In this document: one piece after another, positions 36,608 through 53,693 of the stretch
Layout: each line of letters opens with the position of its first letter
Numbering within the stretch: the stretch's first letter is position 1
Sequence record: NC_047838.1
Length of the DNA: 64,000 bases
Direction: 5' to 3' (one strand)
Notes under the pieces: model-generated
What the model saw: only the letters and a program-made list of their open reading frames with translations
The model's database searches: none
What the model was told of the DNA's origin: nothing
Position numbers and translations under genes: made by a program

Positions 36608-37287
36608 TGTTTAACAGGTATGTAAATAAAGCAGACTTGCTTATCTACAGTAAGTTTATTTTAGATAATCAGTATCCTGATAGATACAGGATGAAGAACG
36701 ATCAAGAGCAGCACCTTTATAAGACACCTGATTGTTATTCAAAGTGGGCGTCTATCCTGATGATGTTTAATGAGATTAAAAAGGATGGTATAAAGGTTGT
36801 CGATCTGGGTGTAGGTGAGGGACCAGTTCCACATATTATCTGTGACCAAGGATATGATGTCACAGGTGTTGATAATATGAGAATAGATCATCCATTTAAG
36901 ACTAGTCTGGTACAGATGATTTTAAGAGATGCCATCGAATTTCTTACAGATATTGAGGAAGAATCAGTTGATGTATTTACTGACAGTTGCTCTGTAACTC
37001 ACTTTGATTTTGGTGGTGGACAAAATCCTGGATGGAAAAATGTGTTATCTAGTGTGTATCAAAAATTAAAACCAGGTGGATACTTTCTAATCGCTAGTGA
37101 TTGTCATGCTCTACCTGAGAGAAAAACAAACGGAGAGTTTTTGTTAGGAGAGGAAATTGCTGCTACTGCAAAGGAGTGTGGATTTACGTTGACCACAGAG
37201 TTTAATAATGATAAGATGGATATAATTTATAGAAACGCTGGTCGAGAAACAGACTTATCCGTTGCAACCTTTATGTTAAAAAAATGA
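36607..37287 (+). CDS. Class I SAM-dependent methyltransferase-like
   Basis: VVDLGVGEG motif I, LKPGG. Confidence 0.75.
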   Translation: MFNRYVNKADLLIYSKFILDNQYPDRYRMKNDQEQHLYKTPDCYSKWASILMMFNEIKKDGIKVVDLGVGEGPVPHIICDQGYDVTGVDNMRIDHPFKTSLVQMILRDAIEFLTDIEEESVDVFTDSCSVTHFDFGGGQNPGWKNVLSSVYQKLKPGGYFLIASDCHALPERKTNGEFLLGEEIAATAKECGFTLTTEFNNDKMDIIYRNAGRETDLSVATFMLKK

Positions 37288-37820
37288 TTAAACTTGTTAT
37301 TCTTGATGTCGATGGTGTAATGACTGACGGCAAGAAGTATTATGATCGTGACGGTAATGTCGTGATGAAAAACTTCTGTGATAAAGACTGGACTGCAGTC
37401 AAACGCTTTCGTGCGATTGGAATCCCTGTTGTATTTTTGACAGGCGACCCCTTCAACGCCAAAATTCTAAGTAATAGAAACTTACCATACGTTGTCAATC
37501 GTGGTGAAGGATTTCATAGAGATAAGGTAAATTTCCTTGATGAGATTCTTCTTGACTACAATTGTGGAGCAGAGGATGTTGTTTATCTGGGTGACGATCT
37601 GTTTGATTATGGTATAATGGAGGCAGTAGGACACCCTTACTCCATGGCAGACTCTCCTGCTATGCTTCAGAACATTTCTGTGCCTCTTGCCTGCAAGGGT
37701 GGAGAGAATGCTATCATGTATCTGTACGAAGATCTGGAGGAACTGGAGATTATTCCTCGTATTCCTTATGATGTTGTCATGGAAAAAATCTACGAACTTG
37801 ATTTGAAGGAAAAATTCTGA
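37284..37820 (+). CDS. KdsC-like HAD phosphatase
   Basis: LDVDGVMTDG, YLGDDLFD. Confidence 0.85.
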   Translation: MIKLVILDVDGVMTDGKKYYDRDGNVVMKNFCDKDWTAVKRFRAIGIPVVFLTGDPFNAKILSNRNLPYVVNRGEGFHRDKVNFLDEILLDYNCGAEDVVYLGDDLFDYGIMEAVGHPYSMADSPAMLQNISVPLACKGGENAIMYLYEDLEELEIIPRIPYDVVMEKIYELDLKEKF

Positions 37821-38491
37821 TGAAAGATATTTCTCTTTATGGTCACTTGACGATTGATACGATTGTCGATGGTGTTAAAGAAAGAAAGACTCTGGGTTCT
37901 ATGGCAAACGTCTGGAAAGCGTTGCTAGAACTAGATGCGACCCTTGATATTGGTCTCTCACCTATTGATGTGGGTCAAGCGTTGATCTATATCGATAAAC
38001 CTGCTGCTCAACGGTACTCAAAGGTGCAGTTGAGTCTGGTAGAACATCAGGCAAAGATCTACTCATCGAAGATTCATCACCTGATTTACCTTAATGAGTT
38101 GACTCGGACTGATTTCATCCCTGCTCTGGACGGTATTATCACCGCAGACATCTGTCCTGGTAGGTCTGTCAATAAAGAGTTACTCAAGCATGTAGACTAT
38201 CTGTTTATTTCTGATGAGGATATTGATGGTGACTTGTCTGACTACACAGAGGTAACAAGAGGATGGGTAATTCTGCATAGTGCCTCTGGTAGTGTGGTCT
38301 CAAACGGTGAGAAGGAGTTTTTCTACAAGTTGCCAGAGGATTTGATGCTCAGGGATGTGAATGTCCTTGGTGCAGGTGATACATTTGCCTCTTGTTTCTT
38401 GCATAAATTACTACAGAATGAAGGAGATATCCACAACTGGATTGAATTTGCTCATTTAAAGACGACTGAAATCATTAGGAATTCAATATGA
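37820..38491 (+). CDS. PfkB/ribokinase-family sugar kinase (divergent)
   Basis: C-terminal DVNVLGAGDTF signature. Confidence 0.75.
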   Translation: MKDISLYGHLTIDTIVDGVKERKTLGSMANVWKALLELDATLDIGLSPIDVGQALIYIDKPAAQRYSKVQLSLVEHQAKIYSSKIHHLIYLNELTRTDFIPALDGIITADICPGRSVNKELLKHVDYLFISDEDIDGDLSDYTEVTRGWVILHSASGSVVSNGEKEFFYKLPEDLMLRDVNVLGAGDTFASCFLHKLLQNEGDIHNWIEFAHLKTTEIIRNSI

Positions 38492-39645
38492 AACCAAATA
38501 TCCTTGTCCCTATGGCAGGACTTGGGAGCCGCTTCATCAAAGAAGGGTTCAAGGTTCCCAAGCAGTTAATTAATATCAAAGATAAACATCTGATTGACAT
38601 CTCTCTTGATTGTTTGGATTATGAGGGATGCAATCTTATTTTTGTGGTTCGTGATGAGACAGTCTATAATCACCACATGGACGAACTTCTGCGTAAGAAG
38701 TTTGGTGACGACATCAAAGTAGTTATTCTCGATAAACTAACAGATGGATCGGTTTCTAGTTGTCTTTACGCCGAAGAATATATTGACAACGATGCTCCTC
38801 TTATTATTCATACTCTGGATATTGAGTTTAGACCCGTTTTTAATCCTCATGTTATGACAGAGATGGATGCTGATGGACTGATCCTCACATTCAAATCAAA
38901 CTCTGCAAACTACAGTTATGCTAAGGTCGGTGACGATGGATTTGTCACGGAGACTGCAGAGAAGAAAGCAATTAGCAATAATGCCTGTGTAGGAATCTAT
39001 GGATTCAAGAAAGGATCTGACTTCTGCAAGTATGCACGAGACATGATCAACCGTGACCTACGCACTAAGAATGAGTTTTATATCTCTCCACTTTACAATC
39101 TTTTGATTGAAGACAACAAACAGATCAAGACACGATCTGTAGATAAAATGCATGTCTTTGGAACTCCTGATGAATATCACTTCTACAAAGATAATGTCAC
39201 TCGTCGTATTGGTGATAAACCTATTGCCATTTGTTCTGATCATTCTGGCTTTGAGGCAAAAGAAATCTTCAAAGAAGTTCTAGACAAGCATGGTCTGGAG
39301 TATATTGACTTTGGAACTGTGTTGAATCGTGATTGTGACTACCGTGATTACATCGCATCAGCAGTCAAATCTATCGGTGAGCGTGATTGTGACTATGGAT
39401 TTGGGTTTTGTCGCACAGGTCAAGGTGTGAATATCTGTGCAAACAAGTACAAAGGTATTAGATCTGCTCTGATTTATGATAATTTTGCTATGGAAATGTC
39501 AATCCGACACAACTGTGCAAACTTTTTTGCTATCCCAGCAAAGGATGCAGACTATGATGTATTAGATAAGTATCTTGAGATCTGTTCCTCCAATACCTTT
39601 GATGGTGGTCGTCATCAGATTCGTATTCAGGAGTTGGAGAAGTGA
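38488..39645 (+). CDS. Fusion: sugar-phosphate nucleotidyltransferase plus RpiB/LacAB isomerase
   Basis: N-term VPMAGLGSRF...PK; C-term SDHSG, CRTGQG, HNCAN, FDGGRH. Confidence 0.88.
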   Translation: MKPNILVPMAGLGSRFIKEGFKVPKQLINIKDKHLIDISLDCLDYEGCNLIFVVRDETVYNHHMDELLRKKFGDDIKVVILDKLTDGSVSSCLYAEEYIDNDAPLIIHTLDIEFRPVFNPHVMTEMDADGLILTFKSNSANYSYAKVGDDGFVTETAEKKAISNNACVGIYGFKKGSDFCKYARDMINRDLRTKNEFYISPLYNLLIEDNKQIKTRSVDKMHVFGTPDEYHFYKDNVTRRIGDKPIAICSDHSGFEAKEIFKEVLDKHGLEYIDFGTVLNRDCDYRDYIASAVKSIGERDCDYGFGFCRTGQGVNICANKYKGIRSALIYDNFAMEMSIRHNCANFFAIPAKDADYDVLDKYLEICSSNTFDGGRHQIRIQELEK

Positions 39646-39962
39646 TTGAAGCAAATATTCAAGACTTTCATGGGGGATGGTTCGTAGGAGACTTCGATCC
39701 ATCCCTTTTCAAGAACCCATTTTTTGAGGTTGCACACCATAAACATGAGAAAGGATGTGAAACATTCCCTCATTTTCACAAAGTCACTAATGAGTTGAAC
39801 TATATTGTGAGTGGTGAACTCATGGTTTCTGGTAAACATTTGAAAGCAGGAGACATGTGGATCTATGAACCGAATGAAGTCTCTGATGTTGAGTTCCTTG
39901 AGGACTCTGAATTGATTATTGTAAGGTGGCCATCTATTCCCTCTGATAAGTATCCAGCATGA
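39642..39962 (+). CDS. Small cupin
   Basis: GWFVGDF, PHFH...ELNY, PNE. Confidence 0.75.
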   Translation: MIEANIQDFHGGWFVGDFDPSLFKNPFFEVAHHKHEKGCETFPHFHKVTNELNYIVSGELMVSGKHLKAGDMWIYEPNEVSDVEFLEDSELIIVRWPSIPSDKYPA

Positions 39963-40711
39963 AACTAGCACTTTGTTTTTCGGGGCAACCCAGGTTCACA
40001 GAGGAGTGTTCTGGTAGCATTCTTGCTAATGTTATCCAAAATCATGACGTTGATGTCTTCGCACACCTGTGGTTTGACGAAGATTTGCAGACAAAACCCT
40101 ATAAATTTGGTGGAACTGGTGCATGGGAGGCACAGAGAATCCAAGAGAATGCTATTGAGACCTTCCAAAAGATCTACCAACCTGTCAGTCTGGCAGTAGA
40201 AAAGAGCAAATTCTTTGGTGATCCTGACCTTGATGCTGACTTTGAGGCATCAGAAGCAAAGTATTGGCCAGGTGGTATTGAAGAGCAACCAGACTTTCAG
40301 AAGAGACAAATCAACAACAGTCTCTCATATTTCTACAGTCTCTGTGAGGCAAATAGATTAAGAAAACTGTATGAATATGATAATAAGATAAAATATGATT
40401 ATGTAATTAGATGTAGAACCGATAGCGTGGTGCAAGTTCCCATCCCATATGAGAAATTTGACCCTAATGCAATCCATTTTACGTCACTTCAAGCACCTCC
40501 ACCGTTCCTGAATGACTGGTTTAACTTCGGTGGACCCGAAGCGATGGAGTCATTTATGGGTGTATTCCCTCTCCTTCGCAGTTTGATCCGCTCAACTAAG
40601 GAGAGACGTGAGGGAACATGGTGCATCGAACTAATTCATGTGGAGTTGCTAGATAGAATGGGCATCCCCATGCAGAGGCATCCAATCCCCGTCACACTTC
40701 CAAGATTCTGA
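39959..40711 (+). CDS. Putative glycosyltransferase-like protein (paralog of 44799)
   Basis: LALCFSGQPR...YDYVIRCRTD...NDWF. Confidence 0.55.
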   Translation: MKLALCFSGQPRFTEECSGSILANVIQNHDVDVFAHLWFDEDLQTKPYKFGGTGAWEAQRIQENAIETFQKIYQPVSLAVEKSKFFGDPDLDADFEASEAKYWPGGIEEQPDFQKRQINNSLSYFYSLCEANRLRKLYEYDNKIKYDYVIRCRTDSVVQVPIPYEKFDPNAIHFTSLQAPPPFLNDWFNFGGPEAMESFMGVFPLLRSLIRSTKERREGTWCIELIHVELLDRMGIPMQRHPIPVTLPRF

Positions 40712-40712
40712 T

Positions 40713-42287
40713 ATGAAAGTTGTAATTCCCATGTCTGGGATGAGTCGTAGATTCTCAGTAGCAGGTTATAAAGATCCAAAATACCTTTTAGAGATTGATG
40801 GCATGACTGTCATCGAACATATTGTCAATCTGTATCCAAAAGACTCAGAGTTTGTATTCATTATTAATGACAAACATGAGAAAGAGACTGAAGTAGTTGA
40901 AGTTTTGAACCGTATTACAGATGATCCGACCATCATTACCATCAATCAACATAAGAAAGGACCAGTTCATACGGTATTAGAGGCAGAGAGATTTATCGAT
41001 GATGATGAACCTGTCATCGTTAATTACTGTGACTTCTCTATGAAGTGGGACTACGATGACTTTGTTTCTCACGTCGAAGACACCGAGTGTGATGGGTCTG
41101 TGATCTCATATACTGGATTCCACCCTCACATGCTGGGTAGTGATAACTATGCTTTCTGTAGATTAAGAGAAGGATCATATCAGATCGAAGAGATTAGAGA
41201 GAAGCAACCATTTACTGACAACAAGATGTCAGAGTATGCCTCTACTGGCACTTACTATTTCAAGAAAGGTAAGTATATCAAGCATTATTTTCAGCAATTG
41301 ATTGATGAAGAAATCAGTTGTAAGGATGAATATTATGTCAGTCTTGTTTACAACTTGATGATTAAGGATGGACTTTATAACACCGTATATGAGGTCCCAA
41401 ACATGCTTCAGTGGGGAACACCACTAGATGTGAAGATGTATCAGCAGTGGTCAAATTACTATGCTGACAATATGAATGGCATCAAACTTCTTAAAATTAA
41501 GGGATGCACCACCGTCATTCCCATGGCAGGTGCAGGTAGTAGATTCTCAAAAGAAGGATACGGAGTTCCCAAACCATTTCTTGAAGTGAATGGTGGATAT
41601 ATGATCAATCAGGCACTCCGATGCCTTCCTGAAACTGATAATAAGATCTTTGCATGTCTCAGATCTCATATGAGTATGCTGCCCCTAGAGGACTTTGAAA
41701 ACGTTGTTTGGATTGATGAGGTCACAGAGGGACAAGCTTGCACCACAGAATTATTGGTTGACAAAGTGAACGAGGGTGATTCAATTCTACTCTCTGCATG
41801 TGATAATGGTGCTCTCTATGACTCAGATAAGTTTGCAGACCTTATTGAGAATGTTGAGAATGATATTGTAGTCTGGAGTTATAGAAATAATTACACAGCA
41901 CACCACAATCCCAACATGTATTCGTGGTTAGATGTGGATGATGATGGAAATGTTAACAAGGTAAATGTCAAGAAATTCCCATATGGATCAAACCCTGTAG
42001 ATGAATATGCTATAGTAGGGACTATGTTCTTTAGAAATAAAGAAGTTTATAAAAAATCTCTTGAACGACTGTATGAAATCGATGAGAGAGTTAACGGTGA
42101 GTTCTATGTAGATACACTATTGAACACCGCAATAGAACTTGGATACAAGGTCAAGAATTTTGAGATTGATCACTATATTTGTTGGGGAACACCTAACGAT
42201 TTAAAGACTTATAGATACTGGCAAAGATTTTTTACATCTGTAGATTGGCACCCTTATGACTACTATAAAGATTTCTTCACAGATTAG
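40713..42287 (+). CDS. Tandem double sugar-nucleotidyltransferase-domain protein
   Basis: Two N-terminal signatures VIPMSGMSRRF and VIPMAGAGSRF, each ending WGTP. Confidence 0.85.
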   Translation: MKVVIPMSGMSRRFSVAGYKDPKYLLEIDGMTVIEHIVNLYPKDSEFVFIINDKHEKETEVVEVLNRITDDPTIITINQHKKGPVHTVLEAERFIDDDEPVIVNYCDFSMKWDYDDFVSHVEDTECDGSVISYTGFHPHMLGSDNYAFCRLREGSYQIEEIREKQPFTDNKMSEYASTGTYYFKKGKYIKHYFQQLIDEEISCKDEYYVSLVYNLMIKDGLYNTVYEVPNMLQWGTPLDVKMYQQWSNYYADNMNGIKLLKIKGCTTVIPMAGAGSRFSKEGYGVPKPFLEVNGGYMINQALRCLPETDNKIFACLRSHMSMLPLEDFENVVWIDEVTEGQACTTELLVDKVNEGDSILLSACDNGALYDSDKFADLIENVENDIVVWSYRNNYTAHHNPNMYSWLDVDDDGNVNKVNVKKFPYGSNPVDEYAIVGTMFFRNKEVYKKSLERLYEIDERVNGEFYVDTLLNTAIELGYKVKNFEIDHYICWGTPNDLKTYRYWQRFFTSVDWHPYDYYKDFFTD

Positions 42288-43368: not shown

Positions 43369-44015
43369 AGTTAGCAAGGACGTTAGGTCCATATGCTATA
43401 TGCGGGGAGGGTAACGTCTCCGTGAAGGATGATGACTGTTTCTGGGTGAAAGCAAGTGGTACATCACTTGACACTCTTGAGAAGAAAGATCTTGTCGCGT
43501 GCAAGATGAGTGGTGTGCCTTTTGATTCTCTGGGCATCAAACCAAGTATTGAAACTTCTTTTCATGCATGGTTGCAGCGTGAGTTTGATGCTATCAAGTA
43601 TGTGGCACACACTCATCCTCCCAAGACGATGCAGGTTGTGTGTTCAGAGCAGATTTACTCGTTTGCTGAGCATAGATTGTTTCCTGATCAGGTGGTGAGG
43701 AACGGTGCAAAGTCTTGCGTCGTGCCATATGCCATGCCAGGTAAACCACTTTTAGAAGAAATTAAGAAGAGTGTTCTTGCATTTATAGAGGTTGAGGAAT
43801 ATTTTCCTAAATTGATCTTACTGCAGAATCATGGTATAATTGTAGCGTCTACCTCACACAAAGAGTGTATTGCATCTACTCTGATGTGTGAAAAATCTGC
43901 AGAGATCTTTATTGGTGCAAAGGTTCTGGGTCAAACTAGATTCCTTTCTGCTGAAGAGGTTGAAGAAATTGACAAGTGTCCAAGCGAAGAAAGAAGGAGA
44001 ATGATGTATCGATGA
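43353..44015 (+). CDS. Class II aldolase/adducin family protein
   Basis: GNVS, KPSIETSFH, AHTHP, LLQNHG. Confidence 0.88.
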   Translation: MDSIIELARTLGPYAICGEGNVSVKDDDCFWVKASGTSLDTLEKKDLVACKMSGVPFDSLGIKPSIETSFHAWLQREFDAIKYVAHTHPPKTMQVVCSEQIYSFAEHRLFPDQVVRNGAKSCVVPYAMPGKPLLEEIKKSVLAFIEVEEYFPKLILLQNHGIIVASTSHKECIASTLMCEKSAEIFIGAKVLGQTRFLSAEEVEEIDKCPSEERRRMMYR

Positions 44016-44320
44016 TAATCTACGTTGATATTGACGAGACCATTTGTCATAGAGAAACTTCTACTGACTTTGGAGTGACGCATGACTATACGAAAGCAAA
44101 ACCCATTCAAGAAAACATAGATAAGATTAATAAGTTGTATGATGATGGTCATACAATTGTCTATTGGACTGCACGAGGCAGTAGAAAACAGATTGACTGG
44201 ACTGAACTTACTAAGAATCAATTGGAAGAGTGGGGTGCCAAGTATAATGAACTGAGAACTGACAAACCTTTCTATGATCTTTTTGTTGAAGATAAATCAT
44301 GTGTGATCGAACAACTTTAA
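44012..44320 (+). CDS. Minimal HAD-superfamily phosphatase
   Basis: YVDIDETIC, WTARG, KP, DK. Confidence 0.8.
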   Translation: MIIYVDIDETICHRETSTDFGVTHDYTKAKPIQENIDKINKLYDDGHTIVYWTARGSRKQIDWTELTKNQLEEWGAKYNELRTDKPFYDLFVEDKSCVIEQL

Positions 44321-44802
44321 AAATTATTTCTCACCGAGGTAATATTAAAGGACCTCAACCAGACAAAGAAAATAGACCTAGTTACATCGATTGTGCTATT
44401 GGTAATGGATATCAGGTAGAGATTGATGTCAATCTACGTGATGGTGAACTGTGGTTAGGTCATGATGAACCTCAGTATAAGATCAATCATAAGTGGATTG
44501 ATGAGAGAGCAGATTATCTGTGGTTGCACTGCAAGGACTTTGATGCGGCTAGAGAGTGCTGGCAATATCAAGCATTCTGTCACTCTGGTGATCCATTCGT
44601 TTACACCTCTAACGGTAAGATCTGGTTGCATGGTGAGAATGACAACCTATATACCCTTGACGACATGACTATTATTCCAGTCATTAACGAAGAGGATTCA
44701 AAGTCCTTTGGCACTATGTTGCTGAGAGGGTCTACACAATTTTTTGGAATGCCTTTTGGTGTTTGTACTGACTACCCTGCCATTATTGGAGAATATGTAT
44801 GA
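44299..44802 (+). CDS. Glycerophosphodiester-phosphodiesterase-like (short TIM barrel)
   Basis: ISHRG...EN...VEIDV...LGHD...VCTDY. Confidence 0.7.
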   Translation: MCDRTTLKIISHRGNIKGPQPDKENRPSYIDCAIGNGYQVEIDVNLRDGELWLGHDEPQYKINHKWIDERADYLWLHCKDFDAARECWQYQAFCHSGDPFVYTSNGKIWLHGENDNLYTLDDMTIIPVINEEDSKSFGTMLLRGSTQFFGMPFGVCTDYPAIIGEYV

Positions 44803-45554
44803 GTAAGAAATTTGCGGTTTGTTTTTCTGGGTATCCTAGATTCGTTAGACAACAATTTAAGAGCATCAAAGAGAACTTCTTAGATGGTCTGGGTGACTAT
44901 GATGTCTACGCTAAGTTCCAATGGAAAGACGATTACGAAAATATTCAGATTCATCATGAGTATGATGATAAGTTTGAGGTCAACGAACTTGAGGACTTCA
45001 AAGAACTGTATGCAGACAAACTGAAGAAGATTGAGGTTATTGAACCATACAAGTTTGACTTAGAGTTTAGTGACCAGAGTGCTGAAGGAGATATGTTCCT
45101 GTCCAAAGAGCAGGCAAAGGATGTTGGATATCGAATGAAGTGCCAGTTCCAAGGTATTGCTGACTGTATTGACATCATCGACAATATCGAGGACTATGAT
45201 TATGTTGTCCGCATGAGGACTGATGTGACCTTCATGTCTGAGATTGAGATGAAGGACCTTGAGACTGATGTCATCATGAATCAGGATGGTTTTGTTGCTG
45301 GTCGTGATCGTCCCTGGTCTGATTGGTTCTTCATCTCTCCGGTCAAGGATGTTCAGTTCTTTCATGATATGGCAAAGATTGAGGAGCACTTTAGTGGGGG
45401 TGTCAGACACACCCATAACGTCCTTGCAGAGGTCGGACGTAAGTATGGCATGGAATACTTTGAGTTCTATGTTAGAACTCCCACAGCAACTGGTGGTGAT
45501 ATTGGCACACCGTTTAAGAAACAAACTAACAAGTATACTGTTATTGCACGATGA
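44799..45554 (+). CDS. Putative glycosyltransferase-like protein (paralog of 39959)
   Basis: FAVCFSGYPR...YDYVVRMRTD...SDWF. Confidence 0.55.
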   Translation: MSKKFAVCFSGYPRFVRQQFKSIKENFLDGLGDYDVYAKFQWKDDYENIQIHHEYDDKFEVNELEDFKELYADKLKKIEVIEPYKFDLEFSDQSAEGDMFLSKEQAKDVGYRMKCQFQGIADCIDIIDNIEDYDYVVRMRTDVTFMSEIEMKDLETDVIMNQDGFVAGRDRPWSDWFFISPVKDVQFFHDMAKIEEHFSGGVRHTHNVLAEVGRKYGMEYFEFYVRTPTATGGDIGTPFKKQTNKYTVIAR

Positions 45555-46567
45555 CTACAGTTTTTGCCAAGGCACCGTTGCGTTTAGCGATGGCAGGTGG
45601 CGGAACTGATCTTCTGCCATACTGGAGACATTATGGTGGTGTGGTATTGAATGGGACGATTGACCAGTATGCTTACTGTAAGATTGAACCATACCATGAG
45701 TGGTTGTTTAAGAGTGTTGATCTTGAAGAGGAGGAGGGGTATTTTCCTCTAGGTGATCAGTATGTTGACACAAAATTAAAACTGCTGATCAATACATATC
45801 AATACCTTACAAAGGGTATTGATAGGCATCCTGTTAAGATCACAACATTTGTTGAGGCACCTCCTGGTAGTGGTCTTGGTAGTTCTAGTGCTCTTGTAGT
45901 AGCACTTATCTCTGCTATTGCTGAGTATTACAGCATCCCTCTAGGCGAATATGATGTTGCAGAGTATGCTGTAGAGATTGAAAGAAATATTTGTAACCTT
46001 CCAGGTGGTAAGCAGGATCAATTTGCTGCTGCATTTGGTGGGTTTAACTTTATTGAGTTCTTGCCTGACGGTAGGACAATTGTGAATCCTTTGAGACTTA
46101 ATCCAAAGACTCAGAACATGCTTGAGTTGAGCACGGTCTTGTATTACGTCGGCAAACCAAGGATGGACGAGAGAGTTATTGAGAATACTTCACTTAATCT
46201 CCTCAATAACGATGAAGCAACTCTACAAGCAACACATAGAATCAAATCTGCTGCCATAGAATACAAGAGAAGTCTTCTTCTAGGTGATGTTGATAAGATC
46301 TGTGAGACCATGAACACCTATTGGAAGAACAAAATTCAGACTAATGAGAAGGTTGTCTCTCCTGAGTTGCTAGATAGTTATGAGTTTGCTCTTAAGAACG
46401 GAGCGAAAGCTGCTAAGATATCTGGTGCTGGTGGCGGTGGTCACATGATTCTCTTCACAGATTTTGAGAGGAGACATCAACTTATTTCTGCTCTGAAAAA
46501 GAGAAAGAAGGGAAGAGTGGTGCCATTTAAGTTCGTCAAACATGGGGTTGATGTATGGAGACCGTAG
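45551..46567 (+). CDS. hddA: D-glycero-D-manno-heptose 7-phosphate kinase (GHMP)
   Basis: KAPLRLAMAGGGTD, PPGSGLGSSSA, GGKQDQFAAAFGG, KISGAGGGG. Confidence 0.9.
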   Translation: MTTVFAKAPLRLAMAGGGTDLLPYWRHYGGVVLNGTIDQYAYCKIEPYHEWLFKSVDLEEEEGYFPLGDQYVDTKLKLLINTYQYLTKGIDRHPVKITTFVEAPPGSGLGSSSALVVALISAIAEYYSIPLGEYDVAEYAVEIERNICNLPGGKQDQFAAAFGGFNFIEFLPDGRTIVNPLRLNPKTQNMLELSTVLYYVGKPRMDERVIENTSLNLLNNDEATLQATHRIKSAAIEYKRSLLLGDVDKICETMNTYWKNKIQTNEKVVSPELLDSYEFALKNGAKAAKISGAGGGGHMILFTDFERRHQLISALKKRKKGRVVPFKFVKHGVDVWRP

Positions 46568-46905
46568 AACTTCATCCAAAAGGATGGGGATACGAAAAAT
46601 GGATTGTCAATACTGATGAGTATTGTGGCAAACTTCTCTTCTTTGAAGAAGGAAAGAGGTGTTCGTGGCACTATCATAAACTGAAAGATGAAACTTTCTA
46701 TCTTCAGTCTGGTAAGATGTTGCTTTATTATGGAGACTCTGACGATCTGAACTTAGCAAAGGACCGTATCTTAGAACCAGGAGACAAGTTTCATATCTAC
46801 CGTGGATTGAGACATCAGATGGTTGCAGTTGAACCGTCTGAACTTTTTGAATTTTCAACACAACATTTTGAAGATGATAGTTACAGAGTTATCAAAGGGG
46901 ACTAA
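46555..46905 (+). CDS. Cupin, mannose-6-phosphate-isomerase type II-like
   Basis: KGWGYE, CSWHYHKLKDETF, HQM. Confidence 0.75.
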   Translation: METVELHPKGWGYEKWIVNTDEYCGKLLFFEEGKRCSWHYHKLKDETFYLQSGKMLLYYGDSDDLNLAKDRILEPGDKFHIYRGLRHQMVAVEPSELFEFSTQHFEDDSYRVIKGD

Positions 46906-47524
46906 GTTATATCTGCTGGTAGGTGGTCGTGGAACTAGATTAGCGTCTGTAACTAACGGTAAACCTAAACCTCTTGTAGATATTCAAGAGCAATCATTCC
47001 TTGATATTGTTTTAGACAACTTATCTGGGTTTGATGTCACCTTGATATGCTCTGATTTAAACTACGAATACTTTAAAACTTACCGTAGGTCTGGTTATGA
47101 AGTATTCAACGAAGGCATTCCCTCAGGAACTGGTGGATTTTTACGGAAAGTAAATCTACCAGATTCTTTTTATGTGATGAATGGTGACACCTTTTTCTCT
47201 GGTGATTTGAACCTGGATTGTGATGAGTCAACTATCTTTGTTGCTGAAGAAGATGTGACTCATGACGTTGGATACATCCAAGGAGAGGATGGAAAGGTGA
47301 AATGTTTTGTAGAAAAGAATCCTGATGCATCTGGTAAGGAACTTGTGAGTCTTGGTATCTACAAATTGTTTAAGAAAGATATAGATATTCCGAATAAGTT
47401 GCCCGTCAGTATGGAATATGATATACTACCAAAGATGGAACTATGTTACAAAATTCTAAAGACTAGAAGGTTCGACATCGGAACTCCTGAAAGATTACAA
47501 ACATTCAAAGACTGGGTATGTTAA
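46874..47524 (+). CDS. hddC: Heptose-1-phosphate guanylyltransferase-like
   Basis: LLVGGRGTRL...KPL, GTGG, MNGDTF, FDIGTPE; next to hddA; start uncertain. Confidence 0.8.
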   Translation: MIVTELSKGTKLYLLVGGRGTRLASVTNGKPKPLVDIQEQSFLDIVLDNLSGFDVTLICSDLNYEYFKTYRRSGYEVFNEGIPSGTGGFLRKVNLPDSFYVMNGDTFFSGDLNLDCDESTIFVAEEDVTHDVGYIQGEDGKVKCFVEKNPDASGKELVSLGIYKLFKKDIDIPNKLPVSMEYDILPKMELCYKILKTRRFDIGTPERLQTFKDWVC

Positions 47525-48336
47525 AGATTATTGGTGCCACCGGTAATGTTGGCAAAAGACTTTTAGAAAAATCTCTTGATGTTTGGCATGATGATGTAGA
47601 AGCGATTGCTACACGTCTTGATAAAGATGAATTGGAATATGATTTTGACTCTCTTAATCATGAAGATGTGATTGCTTTTTGTGCAGCAATCTCTGAACCG
47701 ACTGTTTGTGCTAATAATCCTGAACTGGCTAGGAAAGTCAACGTAACTAAAACGATTGAGTTTATTGAAAAGTCAACTCAGAGGGGAGCAAGAGTTGTGT
47801 TTCTCTCAAGTGATGCGGTGTATGGTAATATTGATAATCAATTTGATGAGCAGTGGCATAAAGATCCGATTGGTGTCTATGGTGAGATGAAGTCTGAAGT
47901 TGAGGAATATTTCAGAGGAAGTCCTGATGTCAAAGTGCTTAGGTCATCGTTCAACTTCTTCAAAGAGGATAGATTTACATCGTATCTGCAGAAGTGTGCA
48001 TTAAATCATGAGGTTGCGGAGGTATTCTCTCCTTTTGAAAGATCTATTATTCATCGTGATGATACAGTTGATGCTATACTAAGTCTTTCTAGAAACTGGG
48101 AGGGTCCTCAGTTCATCAATTGTGGTGGTCCTCATACTATTTGTAGGTCTGAGTTTGCTCAAATTTTGAAGGAAGAGGTGTTCCCTTCTCTTCAAATTGA
48201 GATTGTCAGACCACCTGAAAAATTCTATCAAGACAGACCTGGCACGGTATCGATGATCTCAAATCCTCTTGTTAATGTGCTTGGCAGACCACAAAGAACG
48301 TTGAGAGAGGCAATTCGCATGGAGTTTGACGTATGA
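47518..48336 (+). CDS. dmhB: GDP-4-keto-6-deoxy-heptose reductase-like SDR
   Basis: GATGNVG, AAISEP, SSDAVYG, YGEMKSEVE; resembles Yersinia DmhB as recalled. Confidence 0.7.
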   Translation: MLKIIGATGNVGKRLLEKSLDVWHDDVEAIATRLDKDELEYDFDSLNHEDVIAFCAAISEPTVCANNPELARKVNVTKTIEFIEKSTQRGARVVFLSSDAVYGNIDNQFDEQWHKDPIGVYGEMKSEVEEYFRGSPDVKVLRSSFNFFKEDRFTSYLQKCALNHEVAEVFSPFERSIIHRDDTVDAILSLSRNWEGPQFINCGGPHTICRSEFAQILKEEVFPSLQIEIVRPPEKFYQDRPGTVSMISNPLVNVLGRPQRTLREAIRMEFDV

Positions 48337-49352
48337 AAAGAGTATTGATCACCGGAATCACAGGTCAAGTTGGTTCTCAATTAGCAGATTATATTCTCAA
48401 TAACACCGATTACGAAGTAGTTGGTATGATGCGGTGGCAAGAACCACTTGATAACATCTATCACCTGACTGATCGTATCAATAAGAAAGACAGAATCAGC
48501 ATTTACTATGCTGATTTGAATGATGGCATGTCCATCAGGAGAATGATTGAGGAGATTAGACCCGACTATATCTCTCATCTTGCTGCACAGTCATATCCAA
48601 AGACATCGTTTGATATTCCTATCGAAACTCTGCAAACAAACATCATCGGCACCGCTAATTTGCTTGAGGCAATCCGTCAGACACCAAAGTATGACCCTGT
48701 GGTGCATGTTTGCTCGTCATCTGAGGTCTATGGTAAGACACCGACAGGAGTTGTGCTTAATGAAGACACTCAAATGCATGGAGCAAGTCCATATAGTATC
48801 AGCAAAATTGGAACAGATCACCTAGGAAAATTCTATGGTGAGGCATATGGTCTGAAAACATTTATGACTCGTATGGGAACTCATACTGGACCTAGAAGGA
48901 GTGATGTTTTCTTTGAGAGCACGGTAGCAAAACAGATTGCTTTGATTGAAGCAGGTTATCAAGAACCTTATGTGTACGTTGGCAACTTGTCCAGCACTAG
49001 AACATTTCAAGATGCACGAGATGCGGTAAGAGCTTACTACCTGTTGCTTGAAGCAAGTGCTGAGGGTAGGATTGCACCAGGAGAACACTTTAATATCGCT
49101 GGTGACGAGGCATATAACCTGGAGGATGTTGTTAACCTGTTGCTGAGTTTTAGCACAAAGAGAGGTATTACAGTCAAAACTGATGTAAATCGTCTGAGAC
49201 CTATCGATGCAGACTATCAGATGTTTGACAACGCTAAAATTAAAAGTGTGATTGATTGGAAACCTGAGATTCCTACCAGACAAATGTTTCTTGATCTTTT
49301 AGTCCACTGGAGAGAGCAGATTAAGGGTGGTCGTGTGCCCCTGAATCGTTGA
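48333..49352 (+). CDS. dmhA: GDP-manno-heptose 4,6-dehydratase
   Basis: TGQVGSQLADY, MMRWQE, TSFDIPIETLQTN, RMGTHTGPRRSDVF, RPIDADYQ; resembles Yersinia DmhA as recalled. Confidence 0.85.
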   Translation: MKRVLITGITGQVGSQLADYILNNTDYEVVGMMRWQEPLDNIYHLTDRINKKDRISIYYADLNDGMSIRRMIEEIRPDYISHLAAQSYPKTSFDIPIETLQTNIIGTANLLEAIRQTPKYDPVVHVCSSSEVYGKTPTGVVLNEDTQMHGASPYSISKIGTDHLGKFYGEAYGLKTFMTRMGTHTGPRRSDVFFESTVAKQIALIEAGYQEPYVYVGNLSSTRTFQDARDAVRAYYLLLEASAEGRIAPGEHFNIAGDEAYNLEDVVNLLLSFSTKRGITVKTDVNRLRPIDADYQMFDNAKIKSVIDWKPEIPTRQMFLDLLVHWREQIKGGRVPLNR

Positions 49353-51172: not shown

Positions 51173-52122
51173 AAGTAGCAATTGTTGGACCTGGCATCAT
51201 GCCTATCCCACCTACAGGATGGGGTGCAGTTGAGATTCTGATCTGGGATCAGAAACTTGCTCTTGAGAAACTGGGTCATGAAGTTCAGATTGTAAATACA
51301 CCTAACCCTGTTGAAATTATTCAACAGATCAACGCATATCGACCCGACTTTGTTCATGTTCAGTATGATGACTTTGTTGAGGTTGTTCCCTACATTCAGT
51401 ATCCTTGTGCGATTACCAGTCACTTTGGATATCTAGAGCAACCAAGTAGGTGGGATTACTATGGTCCTAGGGTAGCAAAGAAATTTGTAGAACTTAAACC
51501 AAATGTATTCTGTTTGTCTCAGGGCATTAAGGATACTTACAATAGTATGATGGGATTTAAAGATGAGAATCTTTTTGTCACACCTAACGGAGTCAACCTC
51601 ACTAACTTCAAAGTTTCTGACAATCCTGAGTGTCCTGACAAGTCTATCTACCTTGCTAAGATTGACTATCGTAAGCGTCAGCACATGTTCCAGAGTATTG
51701 AGAGTCTGTATTTTGCTGGCAATAATGCAGACCCCCGCTTTGATGTAAACACCAGATACCTGGGTGAGTGGTCCAAGGATCACCTCTATAACAACCTGAC
51801 AGAGTTTGGCAACCTAATCCTACTGAGTGATGGTGAAGCACATCCTCTGGTCTGTCTTGAGGCATTTGCTGCAGGTCTTGGTGTGGTTGTAAGTGAGTGG
51901 GCTGCTGCCAACCTAGATACTAGTAAGGGATTTATCACAGTCATACCCGAATCGAAGATTAGCGATATCGAGTTTGTAGAATCGGAGATTATTAAGAACA
52001 GAGAATACTCTGCAGCAAATCGGGAAGAGATTCTTGACTATGCAAAAGAGTTTGAATGGTCTAGAATAGTTGATGAATACTATGTGCCCGCGATGAACAA
52101 GATTATTGAGAGATATCAATGA
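51169..52122 (+). CDS. GT4-like glycosyltransferase
   Basis: IPPTGWGAVE, PNGV, RKRQH, EAHPLVCLEAFAAGL. Confidence 0.82.
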   Translation: MKVAIVGPGIMPIPPTGWGAVEILIWDQKLALEKLGHEVQIVNTPNPVEIIQQINAYRPDFVHVQYDDFVEVVPYIQYPCAITSHFGYLEQPSRWDYYGPRVAKKFVELKPNVFCLSQGIKDTYNSMMGFKDENLFVTPNGVNLTNFKVSDNPECPDKSIYLAKIDYRKRQHMFQSIESLYFAGNNADPRFDVNTRYLGEWSKDHLYNNLTEFGNLILLSDGEAHPLVCLEAFAAGLGVVVSEWAAANLDTSKGFITVIPESKISDIEFVESEIIKNREYSAANREEILDYAKEFEWSRIVDEYYVPAMNKIIERYQ

Positions 52123-53693
52123 AGAATCTGGTTAGTATTTTTGCAGGTCATGATGCAAACATTTCTTTCTATAGTGCAAAGGAAGATAAGTATTACACAA
52201 TTGAGATTGAGAGACTTGTAAAGAAGAGATATTTTCGTCTGCATGTAGATAATGACGAGCAGACTGTTCGTGATATTCTTTTCGAGTGTAGAAATATTGC
52301 TGCCACAGAGTGGGGTATCACTAACGACTATGAGACAGTTCTCGTCTCATCTGATGGTTGGATTAGTCCACCATCCATCATCAAAGAGGTGTTCAACACA
52401 GAGTCTGTGAAGACTGTTGCCCGACACCATGAGACCCATGCTGCTGCAGCATTCTACAAGTCCCCATTTGATGAGGCACTTATCATCTCCTACGATGGTG
52501 GTGGCGATGATGGATTCTTTAACGTCTATCGTGGAGGACCTGATGGTATTGAAAGTTTTGAAAGCATTCAGGCAGACTTTGGTGGTGCCTATCTTTTGTG
52601 TGGATCTCTAATTCGTGAGGTAGCAGAGAAGAGTAGACATCAACTTGCTCTGTCTGGAAAGTTGATGGGTCTCTGTGCATATGGAAACGTCGTAGAGGAA
52701 TACATTCCTGCATTTGAGAAGTTCTTCTTTGACAAGGACTACAAGAGACTTGCAGAGGAAACTGGTCTGCCTCTAAAGAATGTTGATGATCCATGGGCAA
52801 ATCCTCTGGAGAACTGGGTCTTTGAGGGTCAGCAAGGATACGATATTGCTGCTACGGCACAGCAGGCATTTGAGAATGCATTCTTTACTGTCTTGCAGAG
52901 ATACGAACCCGATCTTCCCCTGGTCCTTACAGGTGGATGTGCCCTTAATGTGCTGGTAAATGAGAAGATCAAACAGGTAAGCACGCGACCTTTGTATGTC
53001 CCACCTGATCCCCATGATGGTAGTCTTTCTTTAGGACACCTGTTCTTGTATAAGAAACCAACCAAGAAAGTAGACATTACATATGCTGGTCTGCCTCTGG
53101 TTGACCGACATAGACTGAAGCGTGAGATCAAAAACTATAATGCCAAGAAGATTACCAAGGCAGATGCTGCTGAACTTCTGAAGCAAGGCAACATTATTGG
53201 ATTTGTGTATGGAGATTCTGAGGTAGGACCACGCGCACTAGGTAATCGTTCTATTGTATGTGACCCTAACATCAAGGAGATGAAGGACATCTTGAATGCT
53301 AAGGTCAAGTTCCGTGAATGGTATCGTCCCTTTGCTCCTTTCTGTAAGAAGGAAGAAGCACACAGATACTTTGACTCACCTAACTTTGAGAACCTTGAGT
53401 ACATGAGCTATGCTCCTAAGGTTCGTGAAGAATATATTGAGAAACTGCCATCCATCACTCATGCTGACAATACTGCTAGACTGCAGACTGTCACAGAAGA
53501 GTCACACGCACACTTCTATGAGTTGCTTACAGAGTTTGGTAAGATCTCAGAGACTAACGTGCTGCTGAATACTTCATTCAACATCAGAGGATTCCCTGTT
53601 CTCTCTTCAATTGAGGATGCTTTGTATGCTCTAAATAACACGCAAATGGATTATGTGGTGATTGAAGATTATCTTTTTGGTAAAGCAGAATGA
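52119..53693 (+). CDS. Carbamoyltransferase (NodU/CmcH family)
   Basis: HHETHA, DGGGD, GKLMGL, GGCALN, GPRALGNRS, REWYRPFAP, LNTSFN. Confidence 0.93.
   Translation: MKNLVSIFAGHDANISFYSAKEDKYYTIEIERLVKKRYFRLHVDNDEQTVRDILFECRNIAATEWGITNDYETVLVSSDGWISPPSIIKEVFNTESVKTVARHHETHAAAAFYKSPFDEALIISYDGGGDDGFFNVYRGGPDGIESFESIQADFGGAYLLCGSLIREVAEKSRHQLALSGKLMGLCAYGNVVEEYIPAFEKFFFDKDYKRLAEETGLPLKNVDDPWANPLENWVFEGQQGYDIAATAQQAFENAFFTVLQRYEPDLPLVLTGGCALNVLVNEKIKQVSTRPLYVPPDPHDGSLSLGHLFLYKKPTKKVDITYAGLPLVDRHRLKREIKNYNAKKITKADAAELLKQGNIIGFVYGDSEVGPRALGNRSIVCDPNIKEMKDILNAKVKFREWYRPFAPFCKKEEAHRYFDSPNFENLEYMSYAPKVREEYIEKLPSITHADNTARLQTVTEESHAHFYELLTEFGKISETNVLLNTSFNIRGFPVLSSIEDALYALNNTQMDYVVIEDYLFGKAE

Follow-up and report, generated by a model that had tools for sequence, protein, structure and literature searches.

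Canonical GmhA and GmhB are common to the ADP- and GDP-heptose routes, and, to our knowledge, no enzyme other than GmhA is known to initiate nucleotide-heptose synthesis. D-lyxose isomerases, which are cupins, convert xylulose to lyxose and fructose to mannose, and the conversion of sedoheptulose to D-glycero-D-manno-heptose is next in this stereochemical series. Here, we analyzed a stretch of 64,000 nucleotides (the window), corresponding to bases 124001–188000 of Synechococcus phage Bellamy (MF351863/NC_047838), a 204,930-bp T4-like cyanomyovirus (Kyanoviridae) with Synechococcus WH8109 as isolation host, the genome of which is 100% complete according to CheckV. We focused on gp216, a small cupin that an earlier reading of the same DNA, made from its letters alone (hereafter the sequence-only reading), had correctly placed between hddA and hddC, since its open reading frame (ORF; 46555–46905) is flanked by genes for an HddA-like kinase and an HddC-like transferase. 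Based on gene order, kinase co-occurrence, fusions, conserved ketol isomerase residues, and the scarcity of GmhA in hosts, we give even chances to the proposal that gp216 makes heptose (7-phosphate) from sedoheptulose (7-phosphate), which is the GmhA step carried out with an unrelated fold.

The gp216 ORF has an ATG start and overlaps the stop end of the upstream kinase gene by 13 nucleotides. In Pfam, the protein matches Cupin_2 alone (31.6 bits), and the motif G-x5-H-x-H-x4-E-x6-G is readable in its sequence together with the His of the second cupin motif (H87). More than 4,400 homologs were found, and the AlphaFold2 (AF2) model is a cupin barrel with a predicted local distance difference test (pLDDT) score of 97.7, which shows that gp216 is no chance ORF. 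The top Foldseek matches of this model were the D-lyxose isomerases 7nzp, 7nzo, and 2y0o. A profile built from 30 family sequences also best matched the D-lyxose ketol isomerases 2y0o (1e-10) and 7nzo (4e-10), with almost the whole domain aligned, while quercetinases, a Thermococcus protein deposited as phosphomannose isomerase (PMI; 6e-5), and CapF (6e-4) ranked lower. ESM Atlas returned nothing beyond "viral cupin" clusters.

This similarity extends to the active site. In the characterized isomerase TsLI, residues K62, H75, H77, K86, E88, H143, E156, and D163 contact mannose, fructose, and Mn, and activity is lost on mutation of K86, E156, or D163 (PMC8378251). In a hidden Markov model (HMM) alignment, the first seven of these residues (K62 to E156) correspond, in order, to K26, H39, H41, K44, E46, H87, and E99 of the cupin; D163 aligns with E106, and an invariant D108 lies two residues further on. 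The mapped positions are invariant or at least 90% conserved among 62 family members. gp216 therefore displays, on a cupin fold, the His/His/Glu/His metal site of D-lyxose isomerases (H39, H41, E46, and H87) and, as K26, K44, and E99, the equivalents of the catalytic and sugar-binding residues K62, K86, and E156. At the level of family models the picture is graded. PF07385 (D-lyxose/D-mannose isomerase) has no match in gp216, scores 17.4 in the P-SSM2 ortholog (cut-off 20.8), and is passed by some relatives (P0249, 30.3; P0212, 27.2). PF01050 (type II PMI) has no match in gp216 at E < 0.01, reaches 22.3–22.5 in Binatia relatives (cut-off 23.6), and is passed by the fusion relative P0212 (24.9). 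There was no match in gp216 to SIS or SIS_2 domains (PF01380, PF13580, and TIGR00441), which places it outside the GmhA family. As judged from these comparisons, gp216 resembles D-lyxose isomerases more than type II PMI, and its earlier description as a type II PMI-like cupin has to be given up, its closest characterized relatives being D-lyxose/D-mannose isomerases. The odds appear balanced that gp216 is a minimal form of the metal-cupin ketol isomerases that serves a pathway new to them.

gp216 belongs to a same-strand block of glycan genes, running from ~34 kb to past 56 kb of the window, which encodes short-chain dehydrogenases/reductases (SDR), GT11/GT6/GT61/GT4 transferases, methyltransferases, a carbamoyltransferase, kinases, and nucleotidyltransferases. 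Its immediate neighborhood reads as follows, in window coordinates.

43976–44320 (RefSeq start 44012), plus strand: gp212, small HAD phosphatase (phrog_1238), candidate GmhB substitute, by HAD motifs, Pfam, and NCBIfam.
44299–44802, plus strand: 167-residue protein inside the module, phrog_34507 (a PHROG of unknown function), no Pfam match.
44799–45554, plus strand: 251-residue phrog_13607 protein, with a paralog at 39959–40711.
45551–46567, plus strand: HddA-like GHMP kinase, putative D-glycero-D-manno-heptose-7-phosphate 1-kinase, by GHMP_kinases_N/C and NCBIfam HddA.
46555–46905, plus strand: gp216, 116-residue metal-binding cupin (Cupin_2), candidate sedoheptulose-7-phosphate/heptose-7-phosphate ketol isomerase.
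46874–47524 (longest ORF from 46823), plus strand: HddC-like sugar-1-phosphate nucleotidyltransferase, by NTP_transferase and HddC.
47518–48336, plus strand: 272-residue RmlD-like SDR, putative 4-reductase (DmhB/WcbJ-like), by RmlD_sub_bind and Epimerase, with weak rmlD/heptose_epim matches.
48333–49352, plus strand: GMD-like NDP-sugar 4,6-dehydratase, putative GDP-heptose 4,6-dehydratase (DmhA/WcbK-like), by GDP_Man_Dehyd (247 bits).

For the kinase, the top NCBIfam model is HddA (279 bits, under the cut-off of 600), and full-length alignment to a picocyanobacterial HddA, encoded beside true gmhA, hddC, and gmhB, gives 38% identity (E 6e-74). The nucleotidyltransferase has HddC as top NCBIfam model with a weak score (62 bits) and is 30% identical to host HddC, and the dehydratase scores 168 bits with TIGR01472 gmd, under its cut-off of 415. 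We take this HddA/HddC/RmlD-like/GMD-like gene set to correspond to the routes by which Yersinia and Burkholderia make 6-deoxy-manno-heptose. Gene order singles out the cupin: in the picocyanobacterial cluster (L092) the order is hddA-gmhA-hddC-gmhB, and in Bellamy it is hddA-cupin-hddC.

The sequence-only reading had noticed that the island lacks GmhA and GmhB. Profile searches extend this to the rest of the phage, with no SIS_2, SIS, TIGR00441 gmhA, or TIGR00213 GmhB in the complete Bellamy genome, and no SIS protein is encoded anywhere in the genomes of the cyanophages P-SSM2 and S-CAM1. Since a kinase, a nucleotidyltransferase, a phosphatase, and heptose-type SDRs are present in these three phages without an SIS domain, there is a hole in the pathway. 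It is unlikely to be filled from outside in most cases: a strong GmhA-like protein of ~200 residues is found in ~24 of 151 Cyanobiaceae genomes (~16%), the remaining genomes having either a weak GmhA match of ~320 residues, which we guess to be KdsD-like, or none. Because GmhA is this scarce, most hosts cannot supply heptose 7-phosphate.

On paper, Bellamy does have a phosphoheptose isomerase. RefSeq names gp212 "phosphoheptose isomerase" and gp216 "cysteine dioxygenase," because both names were copied from PHROG labels, and both are misnomers. For gp216, no cysteine dioxygenase family is among the Pfam or NCBIfam matches, and the only connection is to 4qm9, through the cupin fold in general. 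For gp212, the motifs DIDET, TAR, and DK...EDK can be read in the sequence, in keeping with the HAD motifs (DxDxT, T/S, and K...DD) that it shares with its P-SSM2 and S-CAM1 orthologs. It matches Pfam HAD_PNKP, the NCBIfam EcbF-BcbF and BT0820 HAD phosphatases, and the PNK phosphatase phrog_415; its P-SSM2 ortholog matches PDB entry 9iqw, a "capsule biosynthesis protein" (1e-10). It has no similarity to GmhA (E 0.86). These motifs and profile and structure matches exclude gp212 as a GmhA in disguise, and since gp212 and its orthologs are phosphatases, there is no hidden GmhA in the phage. The phrog_1238 label "phosphoheptose isomerase" is found in the RefSeq/GenBank records of many cyanophages, where the true identity is a HAD phosphatase of ~100 residues (window 44012–44320; locus L001, 5661–6005; locus L002, 5685–6008).

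How the cupin is distributed among cyanophages provides a second line of evidence. Orthologs of gp216, 57–91% identical, are present in 35 cultured cyanophage records, a set that coincides exactly with the 31 records encoding an HldE-N-like PfkB kinase together with the 4 encoding HddA. The module of P-SSM2, S-CAM1, and the majority of the other phages consists of an HldE-domain-II-like adenylyltransferase, an HldE-domain-I-like PfkB kinase, the small HAD, the cupin, and an HldD-like SDR; the best scores of the neighbors are with rfaE domains I and II and ADP-heptose 6-epimerase, and there is no 4,6-dehydratase. Judged by its gene content, the module is of the ADP-heptose type. Between ADP- and GDP-type modules, kinases and transferases are unrelated, and the cupin and the phrog_1238 HAD are common to both, just as GmhA and GmhB are in the canonical routes. 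The Bellamy cupin, which belongs to a GDP-type GHMP/HddC module, is 85–88% identical to cupins of ADP-type modules with the order CTP>PfkB>HAD>cupin (L006–L008), and in a quick maximum-likelihood tree, with SH-aLRT support only, ADP- and GDP-type cupins are intermixed within one viral clade. Such free exchange between ADP and GDP modules is not what one would expect of an enzyme that binds the NDP-sugar.

The same partners recur in uncultured viruses. We counted neighbors within 10 kb in 54 IMG/VR cupin loci with at least 6 kb of sequence on each side, and found the phrog_1238 HAD in 46, which makes it the commonest neighbor, a kinase in 41, an SDR or GMD-like gene in 40, and an SIS gene in 1. 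A kinase without any SDR was seen in 13 of these loci. Fusions tell a similar story. Among 20 multidomain proteins in the set of 50%-identity cluster representatives, the cupin is fused to 1) a PfkB kinase in four, 2) a cytidylyltransferase-like domain (CTP_transf_like) in four, 3) both in one HldE-like protein of 587 residues that has a HAD two genes away, 4) a phrog_1238-type HAD in one, and 5) a NUDIX domain in one; none of the 20 is fused to an SDR. In one uncultured operon (L177, 2614–7470), a CTP-transferase–cupin fusion is found with an aminotransferase, a Zn-dependent alcohol dehydrogenase, a transketolase-like E1 protein, a PfkB kinase, an SDR, and a 110-residue ORF, and this operon may build and activate a higher-carbon sugar.

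From these observations we put forward the following scheme. Sedoheptulose 7-phosphate is plentiful in infected cyanobacteria, and gp216, acting as a metal-dependent cupin aldose–ketose isomerase, would convert it to D-glycero-D-manno-heptose 7-phosphate. The HddA-like kinase would then phosphorylate O1, the small phrog_1238 HAD would strip the 7-phosphate in place of GmhB, the HddC-like transferase would activate the sugar, and the GMD-like dehydratase and the SDR would carry out 6-deoxygenation. A variant would fit the same data, in which the HAD acts first and the cupin isomerizes free sedoheptulose. In this scheme, the substrate, the product, and the order of steps are inferred, and what the data show directly is the fold, the conserved metal and catalytic residues, the gene context, the fusions, the co-occurrence, and the absence of GmhA and GmhB. 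More broadly, and with slightly less than even confidence, we suggest that the cupin family is a hitherto overlooked sedoheptulose-7-phosphate isomerase, which, paired with the ~100-residue HAD, would take the place of GmhA and GmhB at the start of both ADP- and GDP-heptose pathways. These two genes would thus be a nucleotide-agnostic front end through which phages can produce heptose even in hosts devoid of heptose metabolism. The sequence-only reading had picked two HADs upstream of the cupin (37284 and 44012), both of which are present by domain matches, as possible replacements for GmhB. This idea survives for the HAD at 44012, the phrog_1238 protein that travels with the cupin, and not for the one at 37284, which is KdsC-like and lies in a separate module.

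Several observations weigh against gp216 standing in for GmhA. Characterized D-lyxose isomerases work on unphosphorylated sugars. There is no kinase within 10 kb of the cupin in 13 of the 54 IMG/VR loci, and two complete viral genomes of 203 kb encode a cupin (74% identical) and no PfkB or GHMP kinase anywhere. In these two genomes (L126, IMGVR_UViG_3300013114_000447; and L152), the cupin and a HAD are found amid SDRs, UDP-GlcNAc 2-epimerase, a sugar dehydrogenase, and methyltransferases, a layout that recalls capE/F/G. SynMITS9220M01, the closest relative of Bellamy at this locus, has a Bellamy-like cupin module and an SIS-like isomerase as well. The announcement of its genome lists a "phosphoheptose isomerase" among heptose genes (PMC7378029), and the gene so annotated (161866–162372) is genuinely SIS-like. 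It belongs to a second set of genes a few kb downstream, encoding a GHMP kinase, the SIS-like protein, a HAD–cytidylyltransferase fusion, and an SDR, without a cupin, so that there is one isomerase candidate per module. This extra module, which Bellamy does not have (L095, 15923–21518, i.e., 160922–166517), includes the 168-residue SIS-like isomerase, an SDR epimerase, and a GT4–carbamoyltransferase fusion.

Cellular genomes also speak against a simple replacement. In Saccharibacteria, a cluster of an SDR, the cupin, an HldE-type kinase, and a GT9 heptosyltransferase is followed ~5–6 kb downstream by HddA and a true GmhA. Genomes were scanned for the cupin using an alignment of 9 sequences, and ~15 of 40 cupin-bearing cellular genomes also had a GmhA-like protein, so that cupin and GmhA show no general anticorrelation at the level of cellular genomes. 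A promiscuous isomerase acting on both fructose 6-phosphate and sedoheptulose 7-phosphate would reconcile most of the observations. Taken together, the suggestion that the cupin replaces GmhA and a HAD replaces GmhB has the most support of the readings considered. It draws strength from order, co-occurrence, fusions, residues, and host scarcity, and is weakened by co-occurrence with SIS proteins, by the kinase-less genomes, and by the lack of anticorrelation in cells.

Cellular relatives provide an independent check at the family level, on the hexose version of the same chemistry. In Binatia-type metagenome-assembled genomes (MAGs), a cupin ~50% identical to gp216 is encoded immediately upstream of a true gmd (479 bits). 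Five of these genomes, including a closed chromosome, were checked. The ManC that they encode aligns to positions 3–352 of the 467-position GMP_PMI model and, since coverage stops there, lacks the PMI domain; PF01050 finds nothing in the five genomes apart from the cupin itself, below threshold, and type I PMI is missing from four of them. Because a true gmd and a GMP-only ManC are present without another recognized PMI, the Binatia cupin is probably the missing PMI, and such relatives would carry out the hexose counterpart of the reaction proposed for gp216, a point in favor of that proposal. It might then be asked whether gp216 too is a plain minimal PMI, turning fructose 6-phosphate into mannose 6-phosphate and boosting GDP-mannose-derived sugars, with the "heptose" modules using mannose or another source of heptose 7-phosphate. 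Besides Binatia, this would suit the PF01050 score of P0212, the IMG label "mannose-6-phosphate isomerase-like" carried by some members, and the kinase-less viral genomes, which have GMD-like and GDP-Man/UDP-Glc dehydrogenase genes. We nevertheless find it unlikely, considering that the linkage between the cupin and a kinase of HldE-like or HddA-like type is strict throughout the 35 cultured records, that it sits in the gmhA slot, and that its neighbors score best as rfaE domains I/II and ADP-heptose 6-epimerase, a reaction requiring heptose. In addition, PF01050 is matched in the control genome of Synechococcus elongatus, and if marine hosts are alike, a phage PMI would fill no gap, while the "PMI" label of the Thermococcus proteins comes without an assay in its paper.

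A different role is suggested by CapF, the cupin of which epimerizes a UDP-keto sugar in a Zn-dependent manner (PMC5393024). With this precedent, gp216 could be a metal-cupin epimerase or ketoisomerase that takes the NDP-4-keto-6-deoxy sugar from the GMD-like dehydratase and acts on it ahead of the SDR-catalyzed reduction, with heptose 7-phosphate coming from elsewhere. The fold of gp216 is equally like that of the CapF keto-sugar epimerase domain, which counts against the isomerase proposal, and the setting fits as well: SDR and dehydratase adjoin the cupin in Bellamy, SDR or GMD-like genes are near it in the 40 viral loci counted above, cupin–gmd pairs occur in Binatia, and the capE/F/G-like kinase-less genomes place it amid SDRs and UDP-GlcNAc 2-epimerase. 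However, sequence similarity to D-lyxose isomerases exceeds that to CapF by about six orders of magnitude, and the equivalents of the isomerase-specific K62, K86, and E156 are invariant. An epimerase would have no 4,6-dehydratase to work with in P-SSM2-type modules and no SDR in the 13 loci that have a kinase alone, its fusion partners are a kinase, an adenylyltransferase, and a HAD but never an SDR, and 85–88% identity between cupins of ADP- and GDP-type modules would be odd for a nucleotide binder. It would also leave Binatia without a PMI and the GmhA hole open in phages with mostly GmhA-less hosts. We therefore hold this role to be improbable as well. Least probable, with only a slim chance in our estimate, is that gp216 has another cupin chemistry or no catalytic part in a sugar pathway, whether as a dioxygenase (PHROG labels it "cysteine dioxygenase"), a KdgF-like ring-opening enzyme, or a sugar-binding regulator, since no dioxygenase model in Pfam or NCBIfam was matched, members of the family lie among sugar-nucleotide enzymes and are fused to them, and the invariant residues are those of a sugar isomerase site.

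The window contains a second sugar module (37284–39962), with the following genes.

37284–37820: KdsC-like HAD.
37820–38491: truncated PfkB-like kinase.
38488–39645: NTP-transferase fused to an RpiB sugar-phosphate isomerase (PF02502, 111 bits).
39642–39962: second cupin, 106 residues, phrog_24762.

The sequence-only reading had offered the RpiB domain, which is confirmed by this domain match, as another possible GmhA substitute. We rejected it as a general one, because it lies in this separate module and is absent from the P-SSM2/S-CAM1-type modules that likewise lack GmhA. The second cupin was rejected as a paralog of gp216, with 9 of 27 residues matching near the metal motif and the K26/K44/E99 signature unaligned. 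In 6 to 9 IMG/VR loci, a module of this type is again accompanied by the HddA-type module. Each of the two sugar modules has one phrog_13607 paralog, at 39959–40711 (with a weak DUF7796 match) and at 44799–45554, and the homolog in SynMITS9220M01 is annotated "capsular polysaccharide biosynthesis protein." Between them, window 40713–42287 encodes a 524-residue protein with tandem MobA-like/IspD-like nucleotidyltransferase domains, after which come genes for a GT61 glycosyltransferase and a class II aldolase. Downstream, a NodU/NolO-type carbamoyltransferase is encoded at 52119–53693, as it is in two other loci (L074, 5750–7528; L176, 378–2096). Enzymes of this type are found alongside the cupin family not only in cyanophages but also in Binatia MAGs and on one uncultured contig that encodes a PfkB–cupin fusion, a hint that carbamoylated sugars may be a shared end product.

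The cupin family is widespread in marine cyanophages and present too in archaea and candidate-phyla bacteria. Exact-sequence look-ups of the Binatia and Saccharibacteria cupins returned no entries on record. A homolog 71% identical to gp216 is found on a 130-kb contig (L012) of the Prochlorococcus sp. AG-409-P03 single-cell genome, with no recognizable kinase, HAD, or SDR within 10 kb; this contig may be host DNA or phage DNA sorted along with the cell. In a full-text literature search, we found no paper on a cupin-type sedoheptulose-7-phosphate isomerase and none tying cyanophage heptose genes to a cupin. If the proposed role of gp216 is correct, it would add a new enzyme family to the pathway behind lipopolysaccharide, capsules, S-layer glycans, and ADP-heptose signaling, and would account for the ability of T4-like cyanophages, which are abundant, to produce heptose sugars although the pathway is absent from most of their picocyanobacterial hosts. 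The analysis also corrects widely propagated annotations, in which the cupin is labeled "cysteine dioxygenase" or "putative nucleotidyltransferase" and the phrog_1238 HAD "phosphoheptose isomerase." Owing to the latter label, a phosphoheptose isomerase that is in fact a phosphatase has entered published genome notes on cyanophages.

Four known systems are the natural terms of comparison for gp216. With GmhA (SIS fold; TIGR00441 and PF13580), it would share the reaction, as proposed here, and it shares the slot between hddA and hddC and use in ADP- and GDP-heptose modules, but there is no kinship in sequence or fold between the alpha/beta SIS domain and a beta-barrel cupin with a His/His/Glu/His metal site. 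The type II PMI domain of ManC/AlgA/XanB (PF01050) and the 113-residue Thermococcus cupins deposited as PMI (7zvm and 7zvy) are, like gp216, small metal cupins, associated with the formation of a manno-configured aldose phosphate from a ketose phosphate, which for gp216 is a proposal; unlike them, gp216 has no PF01050 match and is linked to heptose-type kinases instead of ManB/ManC. The C-terminal cupin of Staphylococcus aureus CapF (Cap5F/FnlB) is fused to an SDR and epimerizes a UDP-4-keto sugar, whereas the fusion partners of the phage family are kinases and transferases, and the similarity between the two cupins is weak (E 6e-4 over 64 residues). D-lyxose/D-mannose isomerases have in common with gp216 the cupin barrel, the H-x-H...E...H metal site, the equivalents of K62, K86, E88, and E156, the motif N-x3-YC-x-K-x-L, and, as we propose, the conversion of a ketose to a manno/lyxo aldose. 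They differ in being 170–230 residues long, whereas gp216 has 116 residues and is devoid of N- and C-terminal extensions, and in their known members being catabolic enzymes of free pentoses and hexoses, while gp216 would act on a phosphorylated heptulose in nucleotide-sugar synthesis.

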